This document shows, piece after piece, positions 1 to 64,000 of a stretch of 64,000 nt of DNA. A program made the translations under genes and the position numbers. Positions within the stretch are counted from its first letter, which is position 1. The number at the start of each line of letters is the position of its first letter. Source of the stretch: Marsupella aquatica. Taxonomy: Eukaryota > Plantae > Marchantiophyta. The notes under the pieces are model-generated. The model had not been told where the DNA came from. It made no database searches and worked only from the letters and a program-made list of their open reading frames with translations. Location of the stretch: positions 124,001-188,000 of the forward strand of contig OZ316899.1 of the NCBI GenBank assembly GCA_973895155.1. Reading direction: 5' to 3'.

Positions 1-1447
1 CTGATATAAACATTTACCTTGATGGTAGTCACCATGAGAAATCTTAAAAAAATATCTTGTATGCCACTTGAGTGTAGCTCCCCTATGCCTTGTTCAAACA
101 TATTCCTTGAATACACACCAAAAAAGTCATAAGCATAATGTCAAAACTCACTTGCACATTCAAGACTAATCAACTATTCTCAAAACATTAAACTATTCTA
201 TTATTATAAAATCTCTACAAAAGTAAGGCTATGACTTTCAATTGATTAGTAAAACATACATTTAAAAAACAGAAATGAAGTTAGTATGTTTCTTCTCTCA
301 TGAAGGTGCCTGTGTATAAAGTTACTCTCTTCCCAACATGATCATTATGATTCTACACTTATGGGTTTTTTCTTCGTTTCCATTTGCCATTAAAATTGAT
401 GAGAATTTTGTTTTTGTCATTACTAGACAAATCATGATGAATAAATTACACTTTCCAAACAAAAAGTATACTTGTCTCCCCACAAAACAATTAAAAAACC
501 AATGCTATAAATAGTTTTTGAGTTTATGAATTTGTTTGTTAGCCATGTCAACTTTTATTATGCAAACTTCAAATACTTTTAAAAACATCTCATAATTTTA
601 TAGACAAGTACAATGCATAATTATCCATTGCACAAAAACATTGCAGGACAATGAAGTGCAGGTGATTGCCTAGCTCCTTGCCTCCAAGATAGTTTGTTGC
701 TCACCCTTGTGATGAATAATTTGTCACTCGAACAAGCAAGGTGATTGCTACAGTGAGGAGTTGCAATGTGAATTACATAGAGAGGTGGAGACAAACAAAG
801 GATGACAACATTATGAGCTCCTTCCAAATTTTTGGCACTGTATTTGGGCACATCATAGAGTTTTGGCAAACTTGATAACCAAGAAAGACCAGGAAAGAGA
901 ATTAGTAAAACAAACAAATACAATATTACCAATGTGTTAAAAAAAATGAGTTGGACCCACATACTAGTTTTAGTTACATGTCCTCGCCCATGGTTGATGG
1001 GGGGCGGGGTCGGTCTATCTCGTGCCAAGATTTCACCACAAAATACAATAATATGGAGCCTGATGAGACCCTGCCAGGCCAAGTGAGACTCCCCAGTCCC
1101 CACAACCGCGCCGCGGACCTGGTAATGGGAAATGAAGCTTGAGCCAGACATTACATAACTGTGCCTGTCAACTGGCGGCTTAGGACTAATCATTGCAACC
1201 TAGCATTAATTACCCTTCTCAGATTCATTCGCTCGCCCTTATTTGCAAAGACGGTCCATCGCCCCTATTCAATGGGCCGACCAAAAGGATAAAGGAGTGT
1301 CATTATCATTATAATAAGGACCCTAAACCGGATTCCACCACCCTTTTTAGTGGATCATGATCAACATTATTGTATCGCTACCGTAGGGCAGTATTGTGAA
1401 CAACAACACTACTGTTCCAAGAATTTCCTTTGCAAAACTCTCAAATA

Positions 1448-1495
1448 CCAGGCCCGTGACCGAAGCGGTCGGTCACAAAGGCTGAACCATTTTAC
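1448..1495 (-). mobile_element. Helitron-like 3' terminus (copy 1); element would extend rightwards
   Basis: Perfect 8-bp-stem hairpin GTGACCGA-AGCGG-TCGGTCAC (1456-1476). The minus strand reads ...CACGGGC-CTGG|T, matching the Helitron hairpin + CTRR|T end. A near-identical copy lies at 17260. Confidence 0.55.
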
Positions 1496-1714
1496 GCGGC
1501 TTCTACAGTAGTAGATGTGTTAAAGTAAACTGTTGAAATATTCTACGCTCGATTTCGCGGATGAAAGTCGTCTTTCAGATATGGCTGATGATATTTTTCA
1601 AGTATTCATGATATAGTATAGCATGCTCATCCTGGAACATGCTTTACTTTTTGTCTTGTAGTGATATTAAGTGGACAAAATTAAAGAGTAAGACTAGAAT
1701 ACATATTAAATGTG

Positions 1715-1914
1715 AATGAAATCAAATAATATAAATAAAATACATACAATAAAAGTACATGGTGACCAATGGAAAGTACAATTTCATTACACAAAGTTGC
1801 TACGAGTTTTGCACAATGAAATCAAATAATATAAATAAAACACATGCAATAAAAGCACATAGTGACCAATGGAAAGTACAATTCTATTACACAAAGATCC
1901 TACGAGTTGTGCAT
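1715..1914. repeat. Tandem duplication, 2 x ~100 bp, AT-rich
   Basis: aatgaaatcaaataatataaataaaa...gtgaccaatggaaagtacaatt recurs at 1715 and 1815. Confidence 0.9.
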
Positions 1915-4741
1915 GTATTTCAGTGTGTCTTATTAATGACTCTTATTCAATAAAAACCATAAACTTAGGAAAGAAAGCCACAAGGGGAGTTTAAGACAGG
2001 ATGTGCTGACATTTCTTAGAATCATTCCTCTCACTCATGAGTATCCTTAAAAGCCGTAGAAAATGAAACCCTTAGTTTCTCTCTAGGACTTAACAAAGTT
2101 TACAAATTATAAGGGGGCTGCCAAAATAAATTCAAAACACTATAGAATACCAAAAATTTAAAGGGGTCCAAAAATGACTTAAAAGTCTATGTGATACAAA
2201 GGATGCCCCTTGTTAAGGTACATTCTAATAAAAATTCATGATACACAAATATGAATAAGACAAAACATGAGATAGCAGCTTCATGAAAAACCAGGAGTTT
2301 ATAGGATCTCATCACGGATAACATTCTCGAAGGTATTATGTACCCAAACTACCGTTGCCTCTGCAAAAACTAAACCTGGTTGGGGGGACAGAGTATAGGG
2401 TATTTTTGTGAGGAAAGTATGCGGAGAAAAGAGCTTGGAATCATTTTCGGGCCATTCGTCTGTCACAATGCCTGCCTTGCATCTGCCCAAAATTCTGGAC
2501 ATTTTGGGAAAATCTGAATATCTAAATTATCATTTAAATATACATGTTAAGAGTCGCCTGCAAATAAATTTTAAATTTAAAAAAAAAACACCCTCATGTT
2601 GTGCGACCATACATGGACCACCGTTGCGCGTGCCCATGCACAAACCTTTTCCCTCCCCAATAGCAACACTTTCACAACAATAACCTCGGGGGCCTCACGC
2701 CAAGGGGGTCTCATATCACAAAGTTTTTGGGGAATAGCACATTAGACATGAGTAAAAGTTTTAATCACTGATTTTTTAAACACAAATTCTTTTGACTTTT
2801 TAGAATCTTCTTATAATTTGCAAAAATTTATTAAAACAGCCCTAATGTTCTTCCACAAAAATGTATTAGTCTTTCACAAAATCCAATAAAAAAAACCTGC
2901 ATTATGGGTCGGAAGCAAATAAGTGAGGACCAGCGGACAACAACAACGATGACCAAACTGATAATAACAATTTTACAGCACTAGCAACCCAACCAAAATG
3001 AGGAGAGATTTGCAACCATGAAGAATGACAAACAATCCGGCCCGTGCATTTTAATGTAGTGCACTCTCATGGTTGTTTTCCAAAAACTTTGTGCCAACAA
3101 AAGACTGTGAAGCAAAACATGGAAGGGGTCAAAGAGACTGGAAAAAAAAGGGGGCGATGATCAAGGAGAAAGTGGGAGGCACATGGATGGGAAGACACGG
3201 CCTTCGAAGCTCTATGGATGAGAAAAGGGGATGATAACTTTTGAATTCAAAACTTAGAGCACGGTCAACCATTTTTTACTTTCATTCGTACTTTATTCAA
3301 AAGTTGAAATTTGAAAGTCTTAGAGCTCATAGAATAAACATGGTGACCATATACTGTGGCAAAATCTTAGTACCAATGGAGCATGGGGTCAAGATTAAAA
3401 AAATAGGCAAAGATAGCCAACATTTGCCTGATTCAAATCAATGTGGCATGGAAGAACTAGAAAAAAAACCTAACCCTAATAACTCTTTCCATGATATGTG
3501 AAGGGTTGTGAAATGAATGTCGTTTTGCATACGAATGGACTTTCTTATTGCTAGTTGTGTTGAGATACATGTGTTGAGGAACCAGGGTACAACGCACAAT
3601 CTATCTTGACTTGAAAGATGTTTGGTTCACCCAGTTCAGGGTGCGTCCTTGACCAAAATGCTAGGGAAAATTGACTATACATAATTATGAACACCATACA
3701 TTGGCCATAGCTTGGCAAATCACATGCTGGGTCGATGACACTATACTCTTCTCTCACTCCACTCTCCAACGCTTGAACATTGATATCTAGTGTCAGCACA
3801 ATGAAGTGTTCCTCCAAGGTATATAGGCCCTCTCCACTATTCTAACCTCAGCAGCACTAATTCATGGTAAAGTACGTTGTGTTTGGAGGGCTTAACCTAT
3901 TTAACCACTTGCTTGTCTTCAGTTAAGTATCAACAAGTTGTTAACCCTTGCTACTCTCAACAATGTTGTTATGGATGGGGCACTTGTAAGGGAAACCTAC
4001 ATCCTCATTCTCCCTCCCCCATCATCCCTTACCACATGAAATTAGTTTGTGGACTCCCTGGCTACATTTTTTAGGGCTTGTTTGAGTAAAAATAATCTAT
4101 GTAATGCTAGCTTTAACTCAAGTTGCGAGAGCCTATTATGGTCCAAAATGTTATGGTATCAAAGATTATTACGATGAGATAGTTTTACAAATCTTAATGA
4201 AAGTATAGGAGAAATTACCTCATGCATACAAATCTGATTTTATAATGTTCTTCATAATGACCAGGAAAATAAGGGCCTTTAGCTTGGGTTTTGAGAGGCT
4301 AATATGGTCCATAATGTTCTGCTAGCTAGAAGACATTAAAACACTTCAGCTCTATGAGATATTTTAACTATTATTACATTAAAACACTTAAGAGATATTT
4401 TAACTAAGTTTAGAACATTAATTCATGAACCCAAGGCACAGTTTTGTTTATGTTAGTTGATTTTGGCATTGGATGGCACTATATTCAACCAATAAATTGC
4501 CCTGGGCACTCAATTTGAGTTGAGAAGACACAATTGAGAAATCTGCTTTTCTCAACAAGGAACCCTAAGCTTTCTAGTAGCTGAGTCCTCTTTGTAGATT
4601 TGTCAATGTACTTTCAAATAACTGGAAATTCTAGAGATGTCACTGAAGTCTGACTTTGGCAAGTTTTGAATTAGAGGTTAATAGCCTCATGACCTTGACG
4701 CAACTATTCACCAAATGGAGAAGGGTAGCGCTTAAGCTTTC

Positions 4742-4812: not shown

Positions 4813-6488
4813 CTGATTAGGAAGATTAGGAAGGGATGCTGGTAGTCATGTTGTGTTCGACAAATATGATTGATAGATTTTCACAGCTTGCATTGTTTAG
4901 ATTAGATTTTATCAAGAAATCATTGTGGACCCATTCAGCCATGCCCTGAGCAGTTTGACATTTTTTCAACTGTCACAGGAATGCTTTGCTTTCCAGGCCA
5001 AAGTCGACAACATGGTTATCACAAGCAAATGTCAAAATCAGTCTTTTTTGCTACATGCAACCAACCAAATTCTCAAGCTAAGAGAGTTAATAGTCAATCC
5101 TCGGCAAATACATTTGAAACCAGTTCAATGTCTGATCAAATGAATTGTATCAATTCACCAAGTTCAAGTTCCGACCATAGTTTGCCTAAATTGCAAAAGG
5201 TTGAAAATCTTACTCCATGTGCTAATTACCCTTTAACAAGGAAGTTATCAAGTTAGTTATTAGTCATTGTTTATTACATGATTTAATTTTTAAAATTGGA
5301 TATGTAACTAAAATGGTTACATAGTGACAGTTTTACCCGTCTTGCTCTTTGCATTTATAAATTTTTACATCCCTTTTTTACTCTAAAATTTCTAAACCCT
5401 AAACCCCAAACCCCAAAATTCACAGCCAAGTTGATGCAAACATGAATGAAAACTGCAAATTTGATTCACAAAATGGACAAGTCTTGTTTGTTGTAATTGT
5501 TGTTGACGTGGCACACTCTGGTGCCAGGAATTTTGGAAGGGACCTCTAATGGGGTCCGTTCCAACTTTCCTTTTTGGAAGAGTCCAAATTGACAAAAAAG
5601 TGATTGGCAATTTAAAGCTCAATAATGTTACCCTAAACTAGACCTACATACTGGTTTAATTTATTAACAATTATTCTTCCACTACTTTTGTATTCCTCCC
5701 CTCTTTTTTAGCCCCTTCAAAAGAGTCGTCCCTCTTCCAGGTGACCCATTTCACCCAAAGGAAAAAGAAATAAAAAAAGAATTAAATTAAAAAAACTGAT
5801 AAATCAAAGACATGGAACGCTCCCACACAAAAAAGGTCCCTTAAAAAGAGTCAAGCCCCTTGGAAACAGTGTCACAGGTGACCCATTTCACCCATGGGAA
5901 AAAAAGAAAAGAACAAAAGAGAAAGAAGAAAGAAGGAAAAAACAAACACATTGAAAGTAAGTTGGAGAGAATAAAGATAGAGGGAGCCATTGATGATAGT
6001 ATACTGTGTAGTTCTATGCCTAACAAGAACTAACGAGTGTTTGTAGACGGTACCTTGTATTTTTCAAGTAGTATACGCAGAATAGTGTGCGAGGAACGTA
6101 TACGCAGGCAAAAAGAAGAAGTTTAGAGTCCTTTTTCGGCCCCCACCACAAAACTGAACTTAAAGGTCTACAGGAGTTCAACCAACGGTCAATAATCACT
6201 CCACTTACAAATATTCTCCTCCGGCCCCAACTCTGGGATCCCTCGCGATTCAATGGGCTGGCGCCTGTACTGCATAGGGTTCATAAACGACGTACTGCGC
6301 TAGTCGGCACCCACGGACCCACCATAACCAGTGGAATAGTAGATGCGTGATTCGGTGATTGTACACCTACCGTCGGGGAGAACAACAACTTACTGTGAAC
6401 CTTTCAAGACCCACTCTGAAATATATGAATAGATGAATGTACAACACAATAATCCCGTAATTTTCTCTCTACAGGACTATAAATATTG

Positions 6489-7916
6489 GAGGTATATGCT
6501 CAATCAAACCCCTTTGGACTGTTTCCTGCTTAATCGACCCCCTATGTTCAAATCTGCCCCAATCGACCTCCTATGTTCGAACCTGCCCCAATCGACCCCC
6601 TTTGATATGTTTATGGTTCATGACATGCCGTGTATTGCAATTGCAATCTACCTGAACCTGTCCGTGGGTGCAAGCGACTTGGCCAAACCATCAAATGCTT
6701 CATTTAGGGTCGGTCGTGCCTTGACGGTGACGATCAAGGATTTCAGAAATGATGTGAAGACAATACATGTTATGTCTTCAGGTGTTGCATTATTGAATTA
6801 GCCTCATATAACTTGGTCCAAATGTTCATTGTTTCAAATTCTGTCATGATGACTTCTGTTGGTCATGAGGTTTGGGGGAATCTATTGCATTGAGGGTTAT
6901 TGGGAAGCTCAGTCTCTTTTTTGTTAGAGTTTGCATGCAATCTAGATGACATTGTAGTCGTGTGAGGTACACTTAGAACTATCAATGTTGGAGATTTTGA
7001 TGTCATTGTGCATCTCTGGCATAGAGGGGATCTATTTGAAGTGGACATTTTTTAATGTGACATTTTATCACTACAAGATAGAGCGTGCCCAAAAGCAAGA
7101 CTCAATTGCACGTGGGTTTAGGATAACTGATGGGAAAGCCTATAAGAAAGTTTGTAAGAATTTGATGTTGTCATCAATTGTTGTTGATATGTTTATTCTA
7201 GTGAATACAATACACTTTGTTGAGAGTACATAATGCAGAGTGTCTTAGTTCAATTGCTCGTAATGGAAGCAACAGGCAACTCAAATTCAAACACTAAACC
7301 CTAAACACTTCAAGGATTTTGGAGAATTTTACAGGTGTTTTGGATTCTTGGCTGTCATAATGGTCTTGCGGCATAAAGATTGGAAACATTTTGAAATAAT
7401 TTCTGAATGCAAGTGTGCCGATTTAGCAAATTAATCGGTGTCAAACAGATCCAGCAGGGCATTTTCTGTGAGTGAGATCCAAACATAGATTTGTCTCTAG
7501 TGGAATGCACTCATAAAGATTCTCAACAAATCAACTATATAGGAACATTATGGAGATAGCAGCCCAGTTTTATTACCTCTAAACTTCAGACAAATGGAGA
7601 CCCCTAAATGTTTGAAGACCATACTAGTTTTGTCTTCAAACACAAGTATCCACGACTGCGTCCGGTATCATTCGATCTTATCATGCGTGGATTGTGGGCC
7701 CACTCTTATCTCGACATAATTGCAGCATACCACGGACGAGACCACGGGCTCATATAATAGAAAATTAGAGTTTACCGTGATAAACTCTCCCTATACTACT
7801 CTTCCCAAGAATTATATGTAAGAAATTGTCAGAGGGGGTCGATTGGGGCAGATCTGAACATAGGGGGTTGATTAAATAAGAAACAGTCCAGAGGGGGTCG
7901 ATTAAGCATATACCTT
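6489..7916. mobile_element. Non-autonomous Mutator-like (MULE) TIR element
   Basis: ~85-bp imperfect terminal inverted repeats (left GAGGTATATGCTCAATCAAACCCC...CTGCCCCAATCGACC; right ...GGTCGATTGGGGCAG...GGTCGATTAAGCATATACCTT). Flanking 9-mers TAAATATTG / GAATTATTG match at 7/9 positions, like a decayed 9-bp TSD. No intact transposase inside. Confidence 0.7.
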
Positions 7917-8462
7917 GAATTATTGCTGTTAGGTTTGTCACAGATCCACTAAATTTTGAATGACGAGAATCTTACCCAGGGAGGATTCATGATGATGCAT
8001 TGATATTGTCAATCGTGGTAAATAGAAAAACCTTCCCGGCGGCCGCCGCCACCACTGAGGATGTATTCACTTTCTAGTCACTTGTAGCGCGAGTCGTCAA
8101 ATGACCGCACTCCTCCAGCCCCACTCCTACACAATAATACTCCCCAAGTTCGACAGAACTACGGGGAATATATTTCGAGAGTACAATTTTGTGAATTATG
8201 AACTGCCGTTTCCCGCCCTAAACCATAAACTCGCATCCAAGCCGCCCAAAAATTATCCCGACTCCATGCGCCAGTCCGAGTCTGCCTGTCCTGCAAAATC
8301 GAAAGACTGAGGATTCTCATCCTTCAAACGAACCGATCGAGCCCCCGTGCGTGACTTTTGCAATCCCTCCATTTTCTCAGGCAGGGAGGACCGAACCCAA
8401 TCACAACCGAAGCGAGGATTGTCAGCAAGTCTTTCCGTGATCCCTGCCTTGCTAGCTGATCG

Positions 8463-8515
8463 TCTTAGTGTTCCTTAGTACTCATAGTGTTCCTTAGTAC
8501 TCTTAGTGTTCCTTG
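8463..8515. repeat. 19-bp tandem repeat (~2.8 copies) just upstream of the chimeric gene
   Basis: TCTTAGTGTTCCTTAGTAC at 8463 and 8482, partial copy at 8501. Confidence 0.9.
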
Positions 8516-8546
8516 ACACTCTGGTCACTTGATATATAGGCAGGAT

Positions 8547-10758
8547 ATGGTTCTCGAGAAGGTGACCTCCGGAAAACAACATGAGATGTCTCGAAAATCG
8601 AAGGTGGGGGGGAGGGGGCCATCCTTCAATTGGGCCTTACAGGATCGGGTGCACAAGATCCGCGAGCCGCAACACGCGGAATATCTCCAGCAGACCGGAC
8701 TTGCCGACTTTGTGGTGGAGGTTTGCTGGGATACGAAAAGTTATCCGGACTCGGATATGATACAGTTCATACAGAACTATGACCACGAAAAATCAAAGAC
8801 CTCTGTCAGAGGTCACCCAATCGATTTGAGCATGGAAAATATTCGGAAGACTTTCCGACTGGAGGGGGGGGGGCCGCCGTTAGACGCTAAAGTGACTAAT
8901 TACACTCCCACGACGTTCAAGGCTAGAAGGGCCACAAATGGTTCTTACAAGTTGACAGATTGCGAGCACACTGTCATCCGAGAAAGGTTGGCATTCCAAT
9001 TCGTAGCTATTCATATTCGGCCAGCAAAGGGCGAGGCGTATTCTTGCCACATAAAGCAGGTGGAACAGTCGGCCAGACATGATTGGGGCAAAACTTTTGG
9101 CGGCAAGCTCCGTGAATCACTCGGCTTAGCTCATAAGCAATTCGTGGACGGTAAGATGTCGTCCTACACTTGCCATTTCTCGCCGCATCTTCAAGTCATG
9201 CTAAGTGGGCACACCCCTTGCGTCATGTCTTCGTCATCCCCGGCTCGAGATGCTTCATGCGACGATGAAAGGGTACAGATCACCCTAAACCCCCCGATAG
9301 ATCCGGATGTGAAGGAGTTGGAGCAAGACATAGCGGAAGAGGCGGCCACTGTGAATGATGCGGGTCTGGACGGGGAGCTGGGTGCTGTGCAAGGTGGGGA
9401 TGCAGGTGAACGGTGCCAGTCTCCACAGTACTCGATTGGTTTTTCGGTGGTGACCCCGCACGGAATCCGGAGTCAAACACCGCCAGACGCTGGCAGCGAC
9501 GGTGGTGGAGTGGAAGATGATGTGAACAATGCGATCCTCCCCCAGATTGCCACACCTGCTATTGCTTTACCCGGAGCGGACACATGTTGTCCATGCTCAC
9601 TCCTCGTAGGAGCCTTGGAAAAAGAGAACCTGCTACGGGCGGATGAGAATAACAGGATGGCAACGAGTTTCAACCACAAGTTTGATCTCCTTGAGAGCCA
9701 ACTCCATGAAGTCAAACTTCTTCTAGAGGTAAAGTAACAATAGGATCTTACTAGCCATATCATTATTTCCTGTTCATCTGTCCGGACCATCGAGTATGCG
9801 TTAGTACGTACTATACAAAATGGTCAATTAACTCCTACGTACTTAAACTACTACAAAATCACTAGTGAAAGGACCCTAAATGTTTCCCTTGTCGTACACT
9901 CTATTTTTCATTCTTCAATTCACAATCGCCCTAGCCAGAATGATGAAATATGCTGGTCGGCATAGGTGTGTGGTGACGGGAGACAAGTGTTCCATTATGT
10001 ACTAGAACCGAATTGTTTCAATTGTGACGTGCAGGCCAGAACTCCTCCCACCACCTCGCACAACAGCGCAGGCGAAGAAGACATGAAACCTGATATGCAC
10101 ATCATGTCCACCCTAAATTTGCAGAGAAAACGGATTTTCGATGCATCCGCCCCGAGCAGTCCACCTCCAGCTTCCACACAGGACACCCGAAAACACAAGT
10201 CCGTCCGACTCGCCGACCCTGAAACAGCCACAATGCAGCCAGCCCAATTCGTTGACCCAGCCGGCAAATCGAACTGCAACACGACGAAACATGAACGCAG
10301 ACAAAATAGAAGGTGGACCGAGGAAGAGGAACAGTGCCTCAGAAGTGGAGTAAACAGGTGAGTATGGAGACATCCTGCATCGATGCTCCGCGTTCCACTC
10401 ATATTGATTATCCTGTTTGTGCTTTTCATCACACAGTGAGTTACAGACTATTCGTGTATTCTTGCGGCCAAGATGTATTACCTACTATGGGCTAATCATG
10501 TGTTTGTCAAGGAACATTCATTCTCATTGAATTTCTAACAACAGGTTTGGGAAAGGCAAGTGGAATATCATCCGTAAAGCAAGCTTGGATATTTTGAAAG
10601 GTCGAACAGAGGTAAGCTTTGGTCATATTAATTCGCAATACCACGTTTCAATCCACGGAATGCAAATACGACCCATCGATTTACTCTTGTGGCTTGTGGC
10701 ACAGGTCGATCTCAAAGACAAGTGGCGGAATTTGGAGAAGTCATCTCACGACGATTGA
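8547..10758 (+). CDS. Chimeric 4-exon gene: retrotransposon accessory-ORF domain (Athila ORF1/PF20167-like) + C-terminal TRF-like telobox Myb domain, ~541 aa
   Basis: Exons 8547-9728, 10035-10357, 10545-10611, 10705-10758, all with GT-AG introns and compatible phases (0, 2, 0); total 1626 nt, no internal stop. C-terminus RRWTEEEEQCLRSGVNR|FGKGKWNIIRKASLDILKGRTE|VDLKDKWRNLEK carries the telobox VDLKDKWRN signature. The exon 1 N-terminal domain aligns by eye with Gypsy ORF2 at 56635-58632. Confidence 0.8.
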
Positions 10759-11799
10759 CTGGCTATGGCCATACTGGACAGGGGATATATGGCTTGTACA
10801 TGATTTCAGAGCTGCTTTGTTGCCGTCAATTACACACAAGAAGTGAGCTCCGATTGCACGAGTGATGCGTCGTTTGCCTCTATATATCTCCGAGGCGGTG
10901 AGGTAGAGCACACAGCTTCGTGTCTGGAATGCTCCATAAAACAACCTTTGCAGCATCACAATATAGGATGTTTGTTAGGATTGGATTGGGCTTTGGCCGG
11001 TCGTGTGCACCAACTCAGTCTGGTCAGGAGAGATCACTCGAGCAGGCAAGTGTGGGTTTCTAGGTAGGTGGCATGGCACTATCTTCCCTTACCAGGAGTT
11101 CGCCTATCTATCGGCTTAGTTATGCAATATAAAGATTGAATTGCAATCTACCTATATATACATTTCTTTTTGTTTTTTGTTTAATTCAAGCAAGCCTTCT
11201 TGTCTCCTTCCAGACCCCAAACCCTAAACCCATTCGGTATTTGGTTTCACAATATTCAGTTTGACAATGTCAAGTTAATTCATCCATTTTGAACAATAAT
11301 GTTGGGCCTGTATGGGATGAGCCAGTTTATCGGCCTAAAAAGCTTGACACCACCCCCCATCCTATCGACGTCGCATCTGAACCGCAAAATCCGACATCCT
11401 TCAACTCTTTTCCTCGAACGTCAACCCATGGTCATAATCTGCATCCAGAGAGGTACTTGCGGATGACGACAGAAGGTACAAGGCCAAACGCACCCGTGCT
11501 TCATTCGCTCACCCCAAAACCCTGAATACATGCTCTCATCCGCCCTAACCAAAGCCTGGCCAATTTCGTTTGATGTCCCGATTCATTGACCTACCACAGG
11601 CCAGTAGCTCAATTCCGATGATGATATTGTACTACATCATCATGCTGCCTACAAAACAAAAATTCTGCACGACTGTCGGGTAGAGCCCCTAGCTGATCAA
11701 AATACCTCCCCAACAACACATATCCTTGCTTAACAGATGCTGCTGTAGCTCTACGTGATAGTCGTGCAACGGCGAGGTTGAAGGCAGAGTGGGCGGAGT

Positions 11800-43500: not shown

Positions 43501-46039
43501 CCGTGACTTCTCGAATCCCCTCTCAGGGTCATTGTATGAGAATTGAAGGCCCGAAAGTTCCCCCGTAAGATTGCTAACCTAAGTTGTCTTGAGTCCCTTT
43601 ACCGTTTCAGCCTCGGTTCTCCGGCTCTGGAGTGCAATGTTCACGTCAATGTTTGTTAGGTTGTCGAGAATCGTCCAAGAGAACAACAGCCTTCATTAAA
43701 GCTGAGAATGACTGTGCAATTCCAATTCGTGACTTGTTATTGCACCGTGTTCAGATAAGGGCAAAACAACAGGTTGACGAAGGACATAGAATACAACATA
43801 ATTAAGAGCAGATTTCCACGCCCAGCAGACGAGAACTGCACCTACACTTAACCCTTGTAGACATGCTAGAAGCCAGAAATTCACAGCAGAAACATGCGCA
43901 AGGTCATACAATTGGGCCACTACATTCCCCGCACACCTAAGAACAGGTGCTAATCAAAACAATGGGAGTTCACAACTGTGGGAGAACCTGTTCCAGGGAA
44001 TTCATTCGGTCCTCTTCGAATCCTAGTTTATTTATGGCATCTTGCAGCTTCTCCAATTCCGCCTTACTTGAGCGCAGCTCCTCCTATGCAGCAGCTACTT
44101 CGTGTTGCTTGGAATTGAAATGCTGTTGTTTTGCTTTCAGCTCTTTGTCGAGATGTTTGATCTTTGTTTTGCTCTGCTGCACCTCAGTCGGAGCTTTCCC
44201 TACCGCAGCATTTGCATCATCTCGCTGGTCTGCCAGACTCTTTTGTTCAGCCCCACTAGCCTTCCCTGCTTGAATCCCCTGAACCAAACGAATTTCGACG
44301 AGCCACTGACTTTTCACCTGGACTCTGCTGAATGGACGAAATTTGAATCTTCAAAGTAAACCCTTCAGCTGGTGTACTGTTCTTAGACAAAAACATATTG
44401 CTATGAACATGCTAAAGTCAGCATCGATAGCAGATTATTACCAGTTTTATCAGTGTTGGCTCAATTCCTGTTTGCATCCTTAGAGTTCAAATAACTACCT
44501 GGTAATCTCGTTCAAGGTCTTCCAATGTCTTTGCCTGCTGCTCCACTTTCTCTTTCAGACCTGAAAATTCTTCCTCAGCTTGAAGTTCAGCAGCAGTTTT
44601 GGCGGCGATGACACCATCCAAATCCTTTACATTTCTTTGCAGCTGATAGATAACAGCCAGAAAATTGAGGTGAGTAAACAGGGGTACCTCCCATGATACG
44701 GCTCATGTACCAAAACCTGCCTGCTTTACAGTTTGGCGTCTGAGATTGGTTGCATACCTGCTCAGCAGTAGCTTTCTCGACGTCAAAAGACTCTTGTTTT
44801 GCATTGACAGCAGAGTCGACCTTCACAAGAGCTGTATAGAGCTTATCCACCGCATCAGACAAACTTCTCATGTCACTATTCATCTGCTTCTCTTTGGCCT
44901 CAGTCAATGCAGCAACAGAAGCCTCATTCTGGGCTATTTCTTCCTCTAATCTTACCAACGGCAGATAATTTAATAGCCTCAACCTTGTCTTGCATTTCGG
45001 CCACCTCACCCGAAGAAGCTTCCTTCAACCTCCAGCCTCCGAAAAATTGAAAGCAATGCAGAATCTGTCGAGACGATCCACCACTGCATTGCCGGAAGTC
45101 CACTGTTGGTACTGCGCTCGTTCTTTCCATAGCTTCTCGAGAGCTGGAAGGATGTTTTGACTCAAAAGGTTGTCAATTTCATCCACTTAATTTTGCCTGC
45201 TTTTTTTCCAGAGTCTTGAGAGCGTTCTCTTTTTTCGACTCGTACATCTTAGTTCCAGCTGCCTCTTCTAGCATTGACAGAATCTCAGGCGGCTTCATGT
45301 TGAGTACTTTCGTGATACGACCTTGCATGATGAGAAAGTGAGGATTGTTGATATTCAGCTGTACGGAGTGGAAGAGATTTTGGACCTGGGTGGGCTGCCT
45401 TACGTGGCCATTTATCCAGTACTTGTTCCGTCCACCAACGATAATCTACAGTATGACAAAAGACCATATAATCAGACAATGCCTGACCATGGAATACTGT
45501 GCGAATCGAAATGTTCTCATGTTCTGTCTGCCACTCATTGGATCCGTATCTCTCTTGGCTATTGATCATCAAAATATTTATTCACGAGGTGTGGGGAGCA
45601 TCGGAAGAAAAGACTGACTGTTTCCAGGCCAACAGAGACGGGTGTCTCGGCAAGAGGGCCAACTTAATATCGGAAATTGAATGAAATGAAGTTCAGATAA
45701 ATTCGTGAGGGGTAAACTTACCTGGCGAGTGACAGTAATCTCACTCGAGTCTTCATATCCGATAGGACTTCGCTTACGGTTCGAATTGTCAAACAGAATT
45801 GAAACTGTTGCTTTTGTAATTCCCGCCTGCCCTTGCTTGTAAACCAGCTCTTGCAAGTTGCTTGCCCTAACTTGCTGCAAATTCGTAATTCCCAGCACGA
45901 AGCAAATAGAGTCCAAGATGTTTGACTTACCTGATCCATTCAGCCCTGTTATTGCGTTGAATTGCTGATCAAAGCCGGAAACCACAGTCCTTTGAGCGTA
46001 CGACTTGAATCCGTCCAAGGTTATCTCCTTCACATACAT
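40581..46039 (-). pseudogene. SMC2: Condensin subunit SMC2 (CAP-E) pseudogene, 3'-truncated
   Basis: Exon 1 (45722-46039) [14 protein letters not shown]...[19 protein letters not shown] (Walker A). Further exons: 44758-45445, 44499-44642, 43988-44278, 43438-43626, 43134-43298 (hinge, GGLRRRITIIPLNKI), 42629-42688, ~42106-42197 (SVTLQGDVFEPRGLLTGG), 41774-41870, 41463-41579, 40871-41089, 40581-40727. Frameshifts in exon 2 (extra TTAA at 45187-45190; also ~45030 and ~44953) and TAG stops at 44084 and 43579. No LSGGQ/Walker B exons found downstream. Confidence 0.9.
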
Positions 46040-55987: not shown

Positions 55988-56638
55988 ATGTTGCACACGA
56001 TCCTCTCCAGCTCGGCCATTCGATTCTGGACGCAGTTCCTATCTACCGGAAGGCACTTGGCCGATTCATTGAAACACGCCAACCCGCGCCGATACGAAAT
56101 CGAACGCGAATACGAGAGAGCCATCCGCCTAGCAGGACGACACCACTACGTCCTTAACTTTGACTACCCGTCTCGGAGCGAGCTTTACCGACCAGCAGAG
56201 GTATCTGGGTACTTCTTCAACGGAGACAAATATATCGGGTTCTGGGAAGCATTGCTTCGGCTTCCGGACGAGGTCTTCAATATCCCGGGTACAATCGACC
56301 TGCAGCGACATCACTTCGACCACATCCCTGCCCGGGTTCGGGCTGTCATTAACGGCGAGTCCAGTACCAACCGTTCGACAAGAGCGTCCGCACTCGCTTC
56401 GGAGAACTTCTACCAGCACCTGCAGAGCTTCATGGGAACTCGGCCATCAACCAACATGACCAACTCAGCCGGGCCCGTACCCGTACCCGTGCCCATGCAA
56501 CCTCAGGCTCAGCTTCAGCTTCAGCCTCAGCCGCAGCCTAGCCAAACCCCACCACCTATCACCCAGCCAGCACAGGTACGCTCCGTCATCAACGCTGTGG
56601 ATCTTAGCGATGACGACGAGGCTACCCCACCCTCTTGA
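55988..56638 (+). CDS. Gypsy accessory ORF1 (216 aa, unknown function)
   Basis: Open ATG-initiated ORF; globular N-terminus homologous by eye to 18596-18900; Pro/Gln-rich tail. Confidence 0.7.
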   Translation: MLHTILSSSAIRFWTQFLSTGRHLADSLKHANPRRYEIEREYERAIRLAGRHHYVLNFDYPSRSELYRPAEVSGYFFNGDKYIGFWEALLRLPDEVFNIPGTIDLQRHHFDHIPARVRAVINGESSTNRSTRASALASENFYQHLQSFMGTRPSTNMTNSAGPVPVPVPMQPQAQLQLQPQPQPSQTPPPITQPAQVRSVINAVDLSDDDEATPPS

Positions 56639-58632
56639 CCAGGCGGCCCAGAGGAACAAGCGCTCGGGGGGCCGACACTATATCGTCCCCACCCCCTTCT
56701 CTGACCCCAGGAGCGGCCCCAGTAGACAACATGGTGACCGTGGCCGCCCCGGGCCCGTTACCAACCGCAGTGGCACTCCCCAGGCCCGATCGGGAGGATG
56801 GGGAAGTATCACCTTCCCCGAGTCAGTCACCGGGAAAGAAGAGGAAGGAATCCGCCACTACATCCGGGTTACCGTTGGCCACGGTAGCCGTAGCCAAGGT
56901 GACGATGCACCGCATGGGGGAAAACGTTCACAGCAACATCCTCCATCCCAAGCATGCGGTGTACCTGAAGACTCAGGGATTTGAGCACCTCACCTCTCTC
57001 CCCTGGAACACTTGCAGGTACTACGGGGAGGACATGACAGAATTCGTCAAGAATTATGACGACGTACGTCAACAGACTCGGCTGCGGGGAAGGAATATGT
57101 CCCTCACAGAAGAACGGCTCAAGATGATCTTTGGGTTACCCGAAGGTGACCATCGAGTCGAATCACGGGCTCCCGGGGGCAAGGGGGCCAAGTACCAATC
57201 TTCAAGTTTTCCCTCAGAGGGAGCAGTAGACAACGGGTTCGTGATGAGGACCTGCCTCATGCCCGAGATAGCTGAGCGGCTGGAGTTCCAAAGGTACGCT
57301 CTCCACATGATGGAACCCCGGGGGGAGATCTCCGCCGCCCAGGTTATCCAGGTCGAGAACTATCGACCTAGGAAATGGGCATCGTACTTCGCTAAGAAAT
57401 TCCATGAAGAGATGGAGCGGCGAAGGAAGACGCTGTACATTGGCGGGAAGGCGTATTTCGCTAGCCACATCGAAATCATTCTTGAGTGGTACGCCCGGTT
57501 TGATCGACGAACCCTTCCCCGCATCAACGTTACAAAGCTGGTTCCAGCTAGGTGGGTGTTTCCGGCATTGGAGAGACGGCCCCAACCTGAGGCCCGAAGT
57601 CCAGTGGACACGCCAGCTTCACCCACCCCACCTCCACAAATAGCTGTAACCGTAACCGAGGAGGCGCCGGAGGGGTCGGTCGTTGCAACCGTTGATGCGA
57701 CCCAACTAGCCGGGCTAAGTACAGAAGTTGGTACGGCAGAGGTCTTACCCGAACCCGGGTCTCCCAAGGACCCGCCGGTGGCAATTCCGGAGAACCGGAC
57801 ATCGCTGCAGGAGGACACTCCAGCCCCTTCCAACGTTATGTCCCCAGGGCTAGACGTCACTACCCCGGCCCCTGCGCGTGTTGACGTCTGCCCGTGCCCA
57901 AATCCGGACAGGCACAACTTGGACCACCCAGAACTCTTCGTACAGGGTACGTTCCTGAACGGGCTTCTGGGAGATTTCTCTCATCAAATTGCCCGGGATA
58001 CCGGGGAGTTCATGGCCCGGAAGGTAGCCTGTTTCTTCAATCAGGAGTTGGTTGCCGCCGTAAAGGCAGGTCGGGCCGAGTCGGAGGCCCTTCAGAGGAT
58101 AGAGCGGTACCGGGTGGAGTCCGTGTACCTAAAGAACAAAGTGGCGGCTCAAGAGGCTGAGCTTCTGGCACTACGACCCAAGGTTGCAGCCGCCGATGAG
58201 TTGTTAGCAAAGGCGTACGCTCTTACCGCCCTAGCCGAACAGGCCAAAGCTGGGAACGAGGCCAAGATTACACGACTCCGGAACCAGATTGACAGTTTGA
58301 ATAAACAAGCTGTCACCTGGCAGAAAGACCTGGAGGAGGCCGAGGAGCAAGCCCAGCGGGACACGGCGGAGATAGCTACGCTGCAGGCTGAGATGGCGCG
58401 GCTCCAAACCGAGGCCGAGAAGCAGGACCAGCTGGCGGGTAAACTGACGAGCGACGCCCAGCAGCTGGAGGAGGCATGTCAGGAGGCAGCAGAGGAGACG
58501 GACGCGGCGAGGCGAGAGAACGAATCTCTGCTGGACCAGGTCCAGCTCCTCAAAGCGGACAATGACAGGCTTCGAAGGCAGCGGGATGGCCGTTCCCATT
58601 CGAGCGGCTCTGGCAAGCGTGCCAGGCATTAG
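56635..58632 (+). CDS. Gypsy accessory ORF2 (Athila ORF1/PF20167-like domain + Pro-rich linker + long coiled coil); first ATG 56731
   Basis: 666 open codons; DMTEFVKNYDDVRQQTRLRGRNMSLTEERLKMIFGLPEG motif; heptad-rich C-terminus ending in basic SGKRARH. Confidence 0.8.
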   Translation: MTRRPRGTSARGADTISSPPPSLTPGAAPVDNMVTVAAPGPLPTAVALPRPDREDGEVSPSPSQSPGKKRKESATTSGLPLATVAVAKVTMHRMGENVHSNILHPKHAVYLKTQGFEHLTSLPWNTCRYYGEDMTEFVKNYDDVRQQTRLRGRNMSLTEERLKMIFGLPEGDHRVESRAPGGKGAKYQSSSFPSEGAVDNGFVMRTCLMPEIAERLEFQRYALHMMEPRGEISAAQVIQVENYRPRKWASYFAKKFHEEMERRRKTLYIGGKAYFASHIEIILEWYARFDRRTLPRINVTKLVPARWVFPALERRPQPEARSPVDTPASPTPPPQIAVTVTEEAPEGSVVATVDATQLAGLSTEVGTAEVLPEPGSPKDPPVAIPENRTSLQEDTPAPSNVMSPGLDVTTPAPARVDVCPCPNPDRHNLDHPELFVQGTFLNGLLGDFSHQIARDTGEFMARKVACFFNQELVAAVKAGRAESEALQRIERYRVESVYLKNKVAAQEAELLALRPKVAAADELLAKAYALTALAEQAKAGNEAKITRLRNQIDSLNKQAVTWQKDLEEAEEQAQRDTAEIATLQAEMARLQTEAEKQDQLAGKLTSDAQQLEEACQEAAEETDAARRENESLLDQVQLLKADNDRLRRQRDGRSHSSGSGKRARH

Positions 58633-59652: not shown

Positions 59653-62600
59653 ATGCCCGTCACTCGTTCTCAAGCAGCTTACTTGAGGAGATTGACCAGC
59701 GAACGAGAAAGTGCAACCACAACAAGCTCCGACTCGTCGGGCTCGGAGGACTCGCAATCGTCCCGACGTATGAACATACACCCGGGACCTTCGGGGTCCG
59801 GTTCGACCGGCCCTGCTGCGGTTCCACCACCACCACCACCACCTATGGCAGCCGCTCCACCGGTGGCCCGCGCTGCTCAGGCACCCCCACAAATATCGCA
59901 ACGATCGCGATTTCATTATCGACCTTTCAAAGGGCGTCATGGGGATGATCCGGATGAATGGTTGGATGAGTTTGAAGCCACTGCTAAAGCTAATGGGGAA
60001 GACGCCATTAAGCTAACCGTCCTCCCGGGAGTGATGCGGGGAGAAGCTCGTCCATGGTACAACTCGTTACCACCCGGGACTACCTGGGCACAATTCCAAG
60101 CTGCATTGCTGCAGGAGTTTCGTGCCATTGGATGAGAACAGCGTTCTCTATTAAAGATTGGCCAGCTTCGCATGGAAAAAAGAAAGTCCCTGCGGAAGTT
60201 CATTCAGAAGTTTCAGAAACTTGCGGCCAAGATCCGGCCCAGGCCAGGAGACGCGCTCCAGCTTACATGGTTCCTTCATGGTTTGCCCACGAATATGCAA
60301 TTCTGGGTACGCCAGAATAATCCAATTTCAATGCAGGCGGCCATAGCGTGCGCCGAAACTTACCGGGAGTCCACCTATAACTCCCGGCGGAGCCAGCGAG
60401 CACGCCGCAGGAAGGGTAAGTACGAAACCTTCAGTGATAGTGACTCCGAATCGGACGACGAGAGGAAGAAGAAACGCAAGAAGAAGAAGAAGAAACATCG
60501 TTCGACCTCGTCCAGCTCCGAGACGGAATCCAGTTCGGATTCAGCTTCAAGCATCGGATCCTCTACCTCCAGTTCATCAGGAAGTGACTCGGAGAGCGAA
60601 AGCCGGAGCAAAAAGAAGAAGAGACGAGTGAAGAAGGAGGGGAAGATTAAACCCCGGGCGCGAAGAACGATACCAGATCCAAAGGCTGCCGAAGCAGACA
60701 AGCTAAACGAAATCATGGATCGACTCAAAGCACTGTCAGTACATCTTGCGGAAAAGCCGGTGGAGAAGAAGAAGCCATCTGAGATTCGAGCCCATGCGTG
60801 GTGTTCAAAGTGCTTCCAATCCGGCCATGTGGTGCAGGAATGCCCAAGGTGGAAGAACCGAGTTCACCAAGTAGAGCTGGATGATGTTGACAACCCGGGC
60901 CCCGAATCGGAGTCCACGGAGTATTTCTTTGAGGACCCTCCTGATTCCGTGTACCAGATTTCAACGGTAGGTCCGCGTAATTTAGCGGGTAGAACTGCGT
61001 ACCCCTACCCAAGTAATGGCCGGAGTTTCCAGGTTATCAGTAACCCGAGCATCCCTCCTAAGCCAGGGATTTGGCGGTCCCCGGTTTGTTACAACTGTGA
61101 AAAGCCAGGACACTTTGCGAGGGAATGCACCGAACCAAGACGTCAGGGAGATGGCCGGGGCACCCCACTATGTCAAGTTTGCAAAACGGAGGCTCATTCC
61201 ACGGCCATCTGTCCGTTGGTAATCGCTGCTCGAACGAGTGCGGCTAGACCGGCCCAGGCTGGACCAGTCACGAGCGATGCAGTCGTCCAAATGATTGCTG
61301 TAGAATGGCAAGATGACAACACCGAGTGGGTGAATCTGGTGGACGTGGTGGAACACCCTAATCCATTGGATGAGGCCGAGTGCTACCGAGTGTCGACAAG
61401 GGCCGAACGGAAGGAAGAAAAGACAGAGGAGAAACGGAGGAAAAAGAAAGATACTACTCCGGTGCAGCCAGCGATAAATATACCCCCGGAAAAGGACGAT
61501 GACTACCGACGGGACGACCCAAAGCTGTTTTTCCCCCGCATCAAAGAATTGGTAAAGAAACAGCTGGAGGCTTACGAAGCTCGGGAATACCAGAAGGCAA
61601 TCGATAAGGACATCAAAGCAGCCGAGACAGCCCGGCGACAGGAGCAAGAAAAGCAAGATAAACAAGAGGAAGCCAAGCAGCAGCCAACGAAAGACACAAA
61701 GGAGGACTATGATATAAAGGAGGACGTGAAGAGTTGCCCGGTTACAGCGACGGTGGGGCAACTGCTGCAGAACAACCCACAGTACAGACGACAACTGAGG
61801 GAGTTGCTCATGGGTCGCCGAAGGAGGAGACTACCCCGAGTTGGGAGTGCGGACTGCAACATGATATGCGAGGACCTTGGAGCGCCGGACATCTCGATCG
61901 AAATTAATAACTGTACCATCAAGATGGTTCTTGTAGACGGAGGAGCGGGAGTCAACATCATGACTGAAGAAACGTCAGTCAAGTTAGGATACCTCACGTA
62001 TCAACCCACGGCCCGAGCTATCAGATTAGCAAACGGGGCAAGGGTCCTCCCATTAGGCACGCTCACACGAGTGCTCACTCTGGTGGGAGGGGTAGAGTTC
62101 TATCTCAACTTCTTAGTCATGAGGCCGGTTCGTCCCTCCTCTTATCCGGTTCTTCTGGGCAGGCCGTGGTTGTACGGTGGCCGCGTAGTCACGGATTGGG
62201 GAAAGAAGGAGCTACGGTTTGGGGAACCCACCGTACGGGTATCCTGGGCAATGGACGATTATCAGGGAGAAACCCCACAAGGACCCGAGGAATATGATTC
62301 GGAGACCTCGGAGGAAGAGGAACTCAATATGATCGAACTCATCTCGTCCCTATCCGAGGAAGATGTCTTCGGAGTTGAAGCAACCCGAGAAACACATCTC
62401 CTAAATTACCCGAGGGCTGCCATTGAGTCCACCCCAAGCACATCTACTGTCGGGGATGAGGAAACGCACGAACAACTCGTCGAGACGGAGGACACGGCTC
62501 CAGCTAAGCAGGGAGCCGAGGCTACTCCTTCCATTTCAGAGCCTCGTAACCATGAACCAGCCCAACAACCGCCTGAGGCCGGAAACTCGAGACCGAGACA

Positions 62601-64000
62601 TAAAAAGCGAGTCTCATGGGATCCGTCCATTCCGCAATTGGAGGAAGTAAACCCCATCCCGAGACCAATCCCGGTCCCACCCATGTACGGAGGGGTTCGG
62701 TTAGCTGAGCTTGACGCGAGCCTGGACCCGAGTCTGCGAAACCAGGTTGAAGTCATCAGGAAGGAGCACTACCGGAAGTACACTATTGGGATGGACAAAT
62801 CTTTTAACCTGGGCCAAGCTCTGACGGGGAAGGCTGAAAAATCCATCCAAGCTTTGCTCAAGGAATATGAAGATGTGTTTGCATGGAGTCATCATGATTT
62901 AACAGGCGTCTCCCCCGAGTTGGGAGAACACACGATCGATCTGAACCTAGGAGCCCATGCGGTACGACAGCGACAACGTCGCATGAATCCGAGGTACTCC
63001 ATCTTAGTGAAGGAGGAAATTGATCGTCTCCTCGCCACCGATATCATTTACCCGGTAATGGCCAGCGACTGGGTCTCTCCCATTGTCATTGTACCAAAGA
63101 AGGGAGGTACGGATGGAAAACCTAAGATTCGTATCTGTCAGGACTACCGTAAGCTGAATGACGCAACCCGAAAAGACCATTACCCATTACCATTCACGGA
63201 TATGGTTCTAGATATGGTGGCCCGAAATAATCTATACATTTCTTGACGGGTATTCAGGTTATAACCAAATCTGGATTCGTCTCGCGGATCAGCTCAAAAC
63301 AACTTTCACTATGGAGTGGGGGACGTTCGCATTTCGGAGGATGCCTTTTGGTCTGTGTAACGCCCCGGCTATGTTTCAGCGCCTTATGATGAATATCTTC
63401 CACGATTTCCTACGGGAATTTTTGGAGATATTTATCGATGACTTTGCCATCTTCGGAACCGTTGCCATGCACCCCGAACACCTACGACGAACGTTGCAAC
63501 GATGTCGAGATGTTAACCTCAAACTACATCCCGCCAAATGCTTCTTCGGGGTAGAGGAGGGGGTGTTACTCGGGCATCGTGTGTCCAAACGGGGCATTGA
63601 GGTGGACCAAGAGAAAGTTGCGGCCTGGATGGCGGTGGTGTTCCCCTTGGATCAAAAAGCAGTACGATCCTTCTTGGGCTGCGTAGGGTATTACCGCCGG
63701 TTCATTAAAGACTTTGCTAAAATTGCGTTGCCCTTAACTGAGATGATGAAGAAGGACGCAGCGGTCGAGGAGACACCCCGAAGACGGATTGCTTTTGAGG
63801 AACTCCGTAAACGACTCACCACCGCGCCTATCATGGTCACCCCAGACTGGAATAAGGAGTTCCACGTGTATGTCGATGTGTCAGGGTTCTGTATCGGATC
63901 CGTACTTAGTCAGCTAGATGAGGATGGACGTGATCACCCCATCTATTTCGCTAGCCGTCAACTATTTGCAGCCGAAAAGAATTATTCCCCCACTGATCGA
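59653..64000 (+). pseudogene. Gag-Pol polyprotein (capsid, 3 CCHC knuckles, aspartic protease, RT, RNase H), disabled
   Basis: Capsid DPDEWLDEF...GEARPWY; CCHC knuckles at 60802, 61087 and 61171; protease LVDGGAGVN (61936); RT FIDD (63431); RNase H FHVYVDVSGFCIGSVLSQ. In-frame TGA at 60133 and a frameshift at ~63237 (Y|SFLDGYSGYNQI). Confidence 0.9.

Follow-up and report, generated by a model that had tools for sequence, protein, structure and literature searches.

A predicted four-exon liverwort gene joins a plant-mobile-domain-like module, akin to an extra ORF of Ty3/gypsy elements, to a telobox Myb repeat

The 64,000-nucleotide stretch of Marsupella aquatica contig OZ316899.1 analysed here (positions 124,001 to 188,000; hereafter the window) carries at 8547-10758, on its plus strand, an intact four-exon reading frame. 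The predicted product couples a domain with the fold of the plant mobile domain (PMD) superfamily, related to an extra open reading frame (ORF) of Ty3/gypsy retrotransposons, to a single C-terminal Myb repeat of the telobox type. The chimeric frame itself is confirmed at the level of the DNA sequence. We consider it probable that the gene belongs to an old bryophyte family in which a PMD-type accessory module of Ty3/gypsy elements was fused once to a telobox Myb, and whose products would be tethered to telomere-like motifs and modulate silencing there.

The four exons (Table 1) are bordered by GT...AG throughout and join in phase to give a predicted coding sequence of 1626 nt, that is 541 codons and a stop, without internal stops. 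An initial annotation of the window had proposed an intact gene with a 9728/10035 junction and an end at 10758, and borders, phases and open frame all agree with that proposal. An in-frame stop lies immediately past the donor of intron 1, so the long frame can continue only via splicing; the window has 18 ORFs of 150 aa or more, and the one that contains exon 1 (402 aa) ranks among the longest. Read from the N terminus, the 541-residue protein would consist of a folded domain of about 200 residues (the N-domain), a disordered linker, a single long helix and the single Myb repeat. The tandem repeats just upstream of the ATG may be a promoter or 5' untranslated region (5'UTR) feature. In the presumed 5'UTR, 4 nt present in the window at 8532 are absent from one contig in each of four sequencing runs that contain this stretch.

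The N-domain is homologous to a retrotransposon ORF that lies within the same window. Residues 33-222 share 28% identity with the product of the ORF at 56635-58632 (BLASTP, E 1e-23), over a segment that includes the motifs on which the initial annotation had based its claim of kinship with a Gypsy accessory ORF. That annotation had staked its reading on such a similarity; the similarity was found, and the claim stands. The ORF in question, whose Pfam matches are of coiled-coil type only, sits 1.5 kb upstream of the gag-protease-reverse transcriptase (RT) frame of a Ty3/gypsy element, on the same strand. In Calypogeia fissa a family member (P0015) is found 2.8 kb upstream of gag-protease-RT in the same layout as in the window element, the two elements being 43% (gag-protease) and 72% (RT) identical. 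Given this shared layout, the domain is an extra ORF that a Ty3/gypsy lineage of liverworts has conserved. Since a long coiled coil forms the end of the retrotransposon ORF as well, fold and helix together would be the ancestral layout and the Myb repeat the addition. The element in the window is damaged in RT, where the frame breaks near 63212-63243 (pieces 63001-63243 and 63212-64000) between the YPLPF and LDGYSGYNQI blocks, while the frames of gag-protease and of the PMD-like ORF upstream are open.

The wider family was found by an exhaustive HMMER search alone, which returned 64 representatives among 1.84 billion proteins, all of the named ones from C. fissa. Word-based protein searches were unproductive, whether run with exon 1, with exon 2 or with a profile of 24 sequences. 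For a scan of metagenome contigs, a wide family alignment offered no sufficiently conserved segment, and a narrower one produced 514 pattern matches, none of which was confirmed as a relative. Exon 1 matches no Pfam family, even at E values up to 1, and has no above-cut-off match to PF10536, PF09331, PF20167 or PF03078; three of 28 relatives matched PF20167 (Transposase_32) weakly, with a best E of 0.001, and no other family recurred.

An AlphaFold (AF2) model of the domain, built from a 28-sequence alignment, reached a predicted local distance difference test score (pLDDT) of 94.3. In the ESM Atlas this model matched clusters with PF20167, PF03078 (ATHILA ORF1) and PF10536 (PMD) at template-modelling (TM) scores of 0.67-0.73 over 179-197 residues (0.67-0.72 for the PF10536 clusters alone), and Ulp1-protease-linked proteins were also among the matches at 0.67-0.73. 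A language-model search led to DUF1985/PMD clusters at 0.90-0.91. Within the PDB, the VANC21-DNA complex (9lnj_A) was the sole chain with a Z score of at least 2 (Z 8.4, root mean square deviation 3.8 Å, 192 of 203 residues; VIA-align), and Foldseek on the PDB alone gave a weak row (E 0.013). Judged from the models, then, the N-domain has the fold of the PMD superfamily. The kinship with PF20167, PF03078 and PMD that had been anticipated from the sequence is thus upheld at the level of the fold, by the TM scores and the VANC21 match, and fails at Pfam sequence thresholds. Hydrophobic residues (F, L, F and W) occupy the almost invariant positions of the family, which points to a binding module rather than an enzyme, as does the lack of conserved catalytic-looking residues. 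VANC21, which counters silencing and is encoded by a Mutator-like transposon, binds DNA in a sequence-specific manner (PMC5735166), and the structural kinship of VANC with the PMD-C domain of Arabidopsis MAIL1 has been noted in a recent preprint, which also proposes that PMD proteins may bind DNA directly (bioRxiv 10.1101/2024.09.27.615353).

The C-terminal 63 residues match Myb_DNA-binding (PF00249) in a Pfam scan with an E of 1.7e-10 and 41.3 bits, against a cut-off of 24.4. Their best single-domain matches among solved structures are zebrafish Terfa, human TRF1 and TRF2 and the plant TBP1/TRP telomere binders, with E about 1e-8 for TRF1/TRF2 and 1.7e-6 to 1.4e-5 for the plant TBP1/TRP Myb domains. 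The recognition helix is the canonical telobox VDLKDKWRN (VDLKDKWRNLEK), and a basic arm, RRQNRRW, precedes the repeat; arm and first helix together form residues 486-501 (RRWTEEEEQCLRSGVN). The Pfam match, the motif and the structural relatives together bear out the earlier proposal that the three small exons encode a single telobox Myb repeat. The fourth helix of a Myb extension is absent, the protein ending 8 residues past WRNL without a splice donor before the stop, and neither exon 1 nor exon 2 has a Pfam match at E up to 1, whether to an H1/H5 domain, to the TRFH dimerisation domain or to any other family.

The pairing of N-domain and Myb recurs in distant relatives. Readable DNA was available for four of them: L001 (with family member P0003), L003 (P0071), L004 (P0004) and L005 (P0016). 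In L003, whose N-domain is 29% identical to that of the window, Myb exons lie downstream on the same strand (RRRRWSKEEEQAVRDGVLK, FGTGKWVCIRDHYKVLKNNGRTN and VMIKDKWLGIQK) with introns at the same places; an in-frame GT-AG join exists, and the codon before FG is split in phase 2, as in the window. L004 (36% identical) likewise has Myb exons downstream on the same strand (RPWAQKETDFLKTLVQR, FGEKWAMIAFAGRNTLADRTG and GDCKDRWRNL), split at the same places, and in L005 (27%) a first Myb exon (MKWTDAEVKALREGFDK) follows on the same strand, the contig ending inside that exon. P0004 and P0016 come from one sample, which suggests that deep paralogues coexist in one organism. For P0001, the closest relative at 47% identity, ORFs of 128, 52 and 84 aa were called downstream in a similar layout.

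A maximum-likelihood tree places the four Myb-linked members inside one 8-row group (support 87/86). The Gypsy ORF of the window groups with P0002, P0009 and P0012 (96/92), apart from this Myb-linked group, and the C. fissa groups are also separate from it. Database entries list the relatives as stand-alone ORFs; a Myb is absent from all 64 representatives, and none is annotated with both halves, because ORF callers miss spliced exons. As the pairing recurs in three relatives that are only 27-36% identical in the N-domain, the fusion appears to be old rather than a chance juxtaposition. The comparison fits one old fusion followed by duplication, and such recurrence partly substitutes for transcript evidence on the joining of exons 1 and 2.

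Contigs from the four runs, which represent an organism A and an organism B (the latter in runs X3 and X4), show that the gene is multi-copy at high identity: 24-103 contigs lie over a 3-kb stretch, and a single variant is carried by up to 6 of them. At exon 4 the contig depth rises three- to six-fold, and in X2, X3 and X4 contigs branch off at 10699 and 10736-10741, which indicates that other loci carry a near-identical telobox exon, there with different introns and tails. After position 10838 five organism A contigs switch to TAATATATATAATTA, while one organism B contig is unbroken; this break, 80 nt past the stop codon, is either an insertion polymorphism or the end of a duplicated unit.

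Several observations weigh against an old fusion that still functions at telomere-like DNA. The 9728/10035 splice is a prediction: the four runs with the gene stretch consist of contigs, none of the runs is recorded as RNA, and the contigs pass through the exon-intron borders without joints. Exon 2 has in-frame ATGs (M412, M416 and M419), from which a separate short Myb protein could begin. P0003, whose N-domain is 32% identical to that of the window and which is a member of the Myb-linked clade, has no Myb in the 1 kb downstream, and in L003 the recognition helix has drifted to VMIKDKWLG. The plant TRFL family I needs a C-terminal Myb extension for binding telomeric DNA in vitro, and the Myb in the window is without it. 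Among the near-identical copies, the 40 best-supported differences include 9 synonymous and 18 non-synonymous ones, a ratio of non-synonymous to synonymous change (pN/pS) of about 0.58. A stop inside the first Myb helix, Q494*, is dominant in organism A contigs and absent from organism B run X3 (run X4 has no contigs at the site), and minority frameshifts occur at 8605, 8863 and 9290.

The points on splicing would suit a pair of unconnected genes, in which an ORF of retrotransposon origin, either dead or expressed by itself, lies upstream of an independent small telobox-Myb gene. The exon 1-2 joint would then be an artefact of prediction, the stop directly after exon 1 would close the first gene, the ATGs in exon 2 could begin a protein of about 130 aa, and both P0003 and the relatives called as stand-alone ORFs, 0 of 64 with a Myb, would represent the unfused state. 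We regard this as quite improbable, because the same neighbourhood, strand and order are found in three relatives at 27-36% N-domain identity, and chance insertion would not recur so; moreover, the splice sites in the window are in phase and of consensus type, an in-frame GT-AG join is available in L003, and the stand-alone calls were made by ORF callers unable to splice.

The points on sequence variation raise instead the prospect of a decaying pseudogene copy that is open by chance and without function. Close copies carry Q494* and frameshifts, pN/pS is about 0.58, coding sequence differs no less often (27 in 1626 nt) than non-coding sequence (13 in 1375 nt), and the region is full of broken elements. 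Against decay stand 541 open codons over four exons with all eight splice signals intact, a domain that models at pLDDT 94 and keeps the conserved core residues of its family, a canonical telobox helix and an exon 4 that is nearly identical at other loci, and we give this explanation very little credence. Constraint among the near-identical copies nevertheless looks weak. The statement in the initial annotation that the gene has no disablements holds for the copy in the window and does not extend to the near-identical copies in other runs, which have the stop and the frameshifts. The picture seems to be that of a subtelomeric family turning over by birth and death, in which the window copy is intact and some near-identical copies are broken.

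The surroundings of the gene were examined for signs of mobility and for possible targets. No pair of long terminal repeats (LTRs) or terminal inverted repeats (TIRs) brackets the gene in the window, which holds no second copy of it, and it has no transposase, integrase or RT as a neighbour, the closest ORFs with a Pfam match being more than 35 kb away. The flanks of the relatives show no similarity to the window outside the gene itself, and retrotransposition is hard to square with the conserved introns. The window contains 27 sites of the telobox motif AAACCCTA, against 1.9 expected (14-fold), 24 of them on the plus strand and with clusters located in the satellite arrays at 35.0-38.8 kb, whose repeat families measure 147-300 nt; candidate targets are therefore plentiful around the gene. 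This distribution is consistent with a subtelomeric location in which the chromosome end lies to the left.

Some of these features would be explained if the gene were an accessory carried by a DNA unit that is mobile or was duplicated recently: it would encode a VANC-like factor with which the element protects itself, the protein binding telomere-like motifs in or near its own copies and either keeping those copies unsilenced or guiding the unit to chromosome ends. The fold matches that of VANC21, the anti-silencing factor that a transposon encodes, the copies are several and near-identical, some of them with stops or frameshifts and with pN/pS of about 0.58, P0003 lies 1 kb from a large helicase gene on its metagenome scaffold, and telobox motifs are 14-fold enriched locally. 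We think this explanation unlikely, given the absence from the window of terminal inverted or long direct repeats around the gene and of a second copy within the 64 kb, the lack of an adjoining transposase, integrase or RT with no Pfam-recognisable ORF nearer than 35 kb, and relatives of 27-36% identity that sit in unrelated flanks, two of which keep three introns in place, as expected from vertical descent or plain duplication.

The initial annotation had left two alternatives, a domesticated transposon-derived protein and a protein carried by a mobile element. The evidence favours the former, an old transposon-derived gene family, and disfavours the latter, since LTRs or TIRs do not bracket the gene, the introns are conserved, the flanks are unrelated and the Myb-linked members stand apart from the Gypsy ORFs in the tree.

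Three further features were noted in the course of the analysis. The helicase gene on the metagenome scaffold L001 encodes a 1490-aa protein (143-4615, minus strand), divergently oriented to P0003 (5617-6504, plus strand), in which a long N-terminal region is followed by a RecQ-type helicase at residues 897-1285 (E 2e-30 to RECQ5); the protein has no relative in the 64-kb window. At 6485-7920 the window contains a 1.4-kb element with 91-nt inverted ends (86% complementary) made of 29-30-nt subrepeats; a telobox motif lies inside it, at 7296. This element, which resembles a non-autonomous DNA transposon, is the structured repeat nearest to the gene, ending 630 nt upstream. The minus-strand ORF at 45578-46039 (153 aa) has a match to the ATPase head at the N terminus of SMC proteins (PF02463, E 1e-30) and is probably one exon of an ordinary host gene.

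Table 1. Coordinates of the predicted gene, its parts and associated features in the window
Feature	Residues	Nucleotides	Strand	Description and basis
Tandem repeats		8463-8521	+	three tandem 19-21-nt repeats, TCTTAGTGTTCCTTAGTACTC; end 26 nt before ATG; repeat search
Exon 1	394 aa	8547-9728	+	starts at ATG at 8547; predicted PMD-superfamily domain, linker and helix; ORF, AlphaFold models
Folded domain in exon 1	about 25-222	8619-9212		predicted PMD-superfamily domain; AlphaFold, fold matches
Linker in exon 1	223-347			predicted disordered; AlphaFold model of whole exon 1
Long helix in exon 1	349-393	9591-9725		predicted; pLDDT 75-95
Intron 1		9729-10034	+	306 nt, GAG/GTAAAG ... TGCAG/G (slash, border); predicted from sequence and phase
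Exon 2		10035-10357	+	basic/Pro-Ser low-complexity linker, then basic arm and first Myb helix; phase 2 end
Exon 3		10545-10611	+	second Myb helix, FGKGKWNIIRKASLDILKGRTE
Exon 4		10705-10758	+	Myb recognition helix with telobox signature VDLKDKWRNLEK, then 5 residues and stop
Telomere-like motif		11211-11242	+	CCCCAAACCCTAAACCC; 450 nt past stop; one of the 27 AAACCCTA sites; candidate Myb target
Paralogous retrotransposon ORF	665 aa	56635-58632	+	shared N-terminal domain at residues 96-286, long coiled coil, no Myb; BLASTP
Ty3/gypsy gag (zf-CCHC), aspartyl protease, RT-RNaseH		60172-64000	+	Pfam, translation

If the gene is part of an old family of this kind, its history and action may be outlined as follows. 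The PMD-type module would have been donated by the ORF upstream of gag in a Ty3/gypsy element and fused a single time to a C-terminal telobox Myb. The Myb would read AAACCCTA/TTTAGGG-type motifs, which are abundant in the subtelomeric region, and in this way would serve as a tether that keeps the PMD/VANC-like module at telomere-like repeats or at promoters with teloboxes. If VANC and Arabidopsis MAIN, MAIL1 and MAIL2 are taken as analogues, the module would modulate silencing at such repeats or promoters, probably by opposing it; MAIN, MAIL1 and MAIL2 counter trimethylation of histone H3 lysine 27 (H3K27me3) at promoters that also carry teloboxes (bioRxiv 10.1101/2024.09.27.615353). The PMD-like domain may itself act as a second DNA-reading head; its solved relative VANC21 binds DNA. 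Proteins with a single C-terminal telomeric Myb usually have to pair, and the 45-residue helix ahead of the Myb may make this possible; a homodimer prediction for the helix segment 335-394 scored 0.09, which speaks neither for nor against pairing. We infer these functional steps, DNA binding and the effect on silencing among them.

A bolder extension can be put forward only as a speculation that we ourselves think unlikely. Flowering-plant PMD-C proteins act beside teloboxes in trans and counter Polycomb silencing, and the PMD-fold module here is wired in cis to a telobox reader, which invites a 'Rosetta stone' reading: PMD-type transposon proteins might have worked on telomere-repeat and telobox chromatin since early land plants, and the present family might lie in a subtelomeric island of transposon-derived chromatin genes that sets silencing at the chromosome end.

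PMD proteins, the PMD-PP7 phosphatase fusion (PMC7156037) and telobox Myb proteins are each already known separately. The initial annotation had called the architecture undescribed, and a literature search likewise turned up no account of a protein in which a PMD-fold module is joined to a telobox Myb. Also new here are the tie, seen in two species, between the family and an ORF situated upstream in Ty3/gypsy elements, the structural match with DNA-bound VANC21, the family tree and the evidence of broken sister copies. PMD proteins are a leading case of transposon proteins recruited to gene regulation, and how they find their targets is unsettled; an anciently conserved fusion of the PMD fold to a telobox reader would be a direct and testable link between PMD proteins and teloboxes. 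It would also show the domestication of an extra ORF of liverwort Ty3/gypsy elements and add a fourth architecture to the known plant telomere-repeat binders. Should the gene be silent or decaying, it would be a mere curiosity of a fast-evolving subtelomere.

Comparison with known systems sets the window protein between two groups of proteins. On the N-terminal side, VANC21 of VANDAL21 (PDB 9lnj) is the only solved structure that matches the N-domain and is a transposon-encoded DNA binder; it shares 10% identity with the N-domain, belongs to a DNA transposon, is without a Myb and recognises motifs of the element that encodes it instead of telomere-like repeats. ATHILA ORF1 (PF03078) and Transposase_32 (PF20167) are extra ORFs of plant Ty3/gypsy elements with a fold like that of the N-domain (TM 0.70-0.73), and the liverwort donor ORF, like them, adjoins gag-pol; the window protein, in contrast, matches neither family, lies outside any element, has introns and carries a Myb. 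The PMD-C proteins of Arabidopsis (MAIN, MAIL1, MAIL2 and the PMD-PP7 fusion MAIL3) resemble the window protein in being transposon-derived and in sharing the predicted fold, and they are host genes in which the domain is combined, in cis or in trans, with a second module (PMC7156037). The window protein differs from them in having no Pfam-level PF10536 match, in having a telobox Myb as partner instead of a PP7 phosphatase, and in its origin from a liverwort lineage with the donor ORF upstream of a Ty3/gypsy gag.

On the C-terminal side, plant TBP1/TRP1 proteins (TRFL family I) and the TRB/SMH proteins have, like the window protein, a single Myb repeat with a VDLKDKWRN recognition helix. TRFL family I proteins have a Myb extension after the repeat, which the window protein does not, whereas TRB/SMH proteins begin with the Myb and continue with a histone H1/H5 globular domain and a coiled coil, the window protein having its Myb at the C terminus and no H1/H5 match. 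Vertebrate TRF1 and TRF2 have the same order of parts as the window protein, a C-terminal Myb after a large N-terminal module and a flexible basic linker, and differ from it in that their N-terminal module includes TRFH, none being detected in the window protein, where that place is taken by the predicted PMD-type fold.

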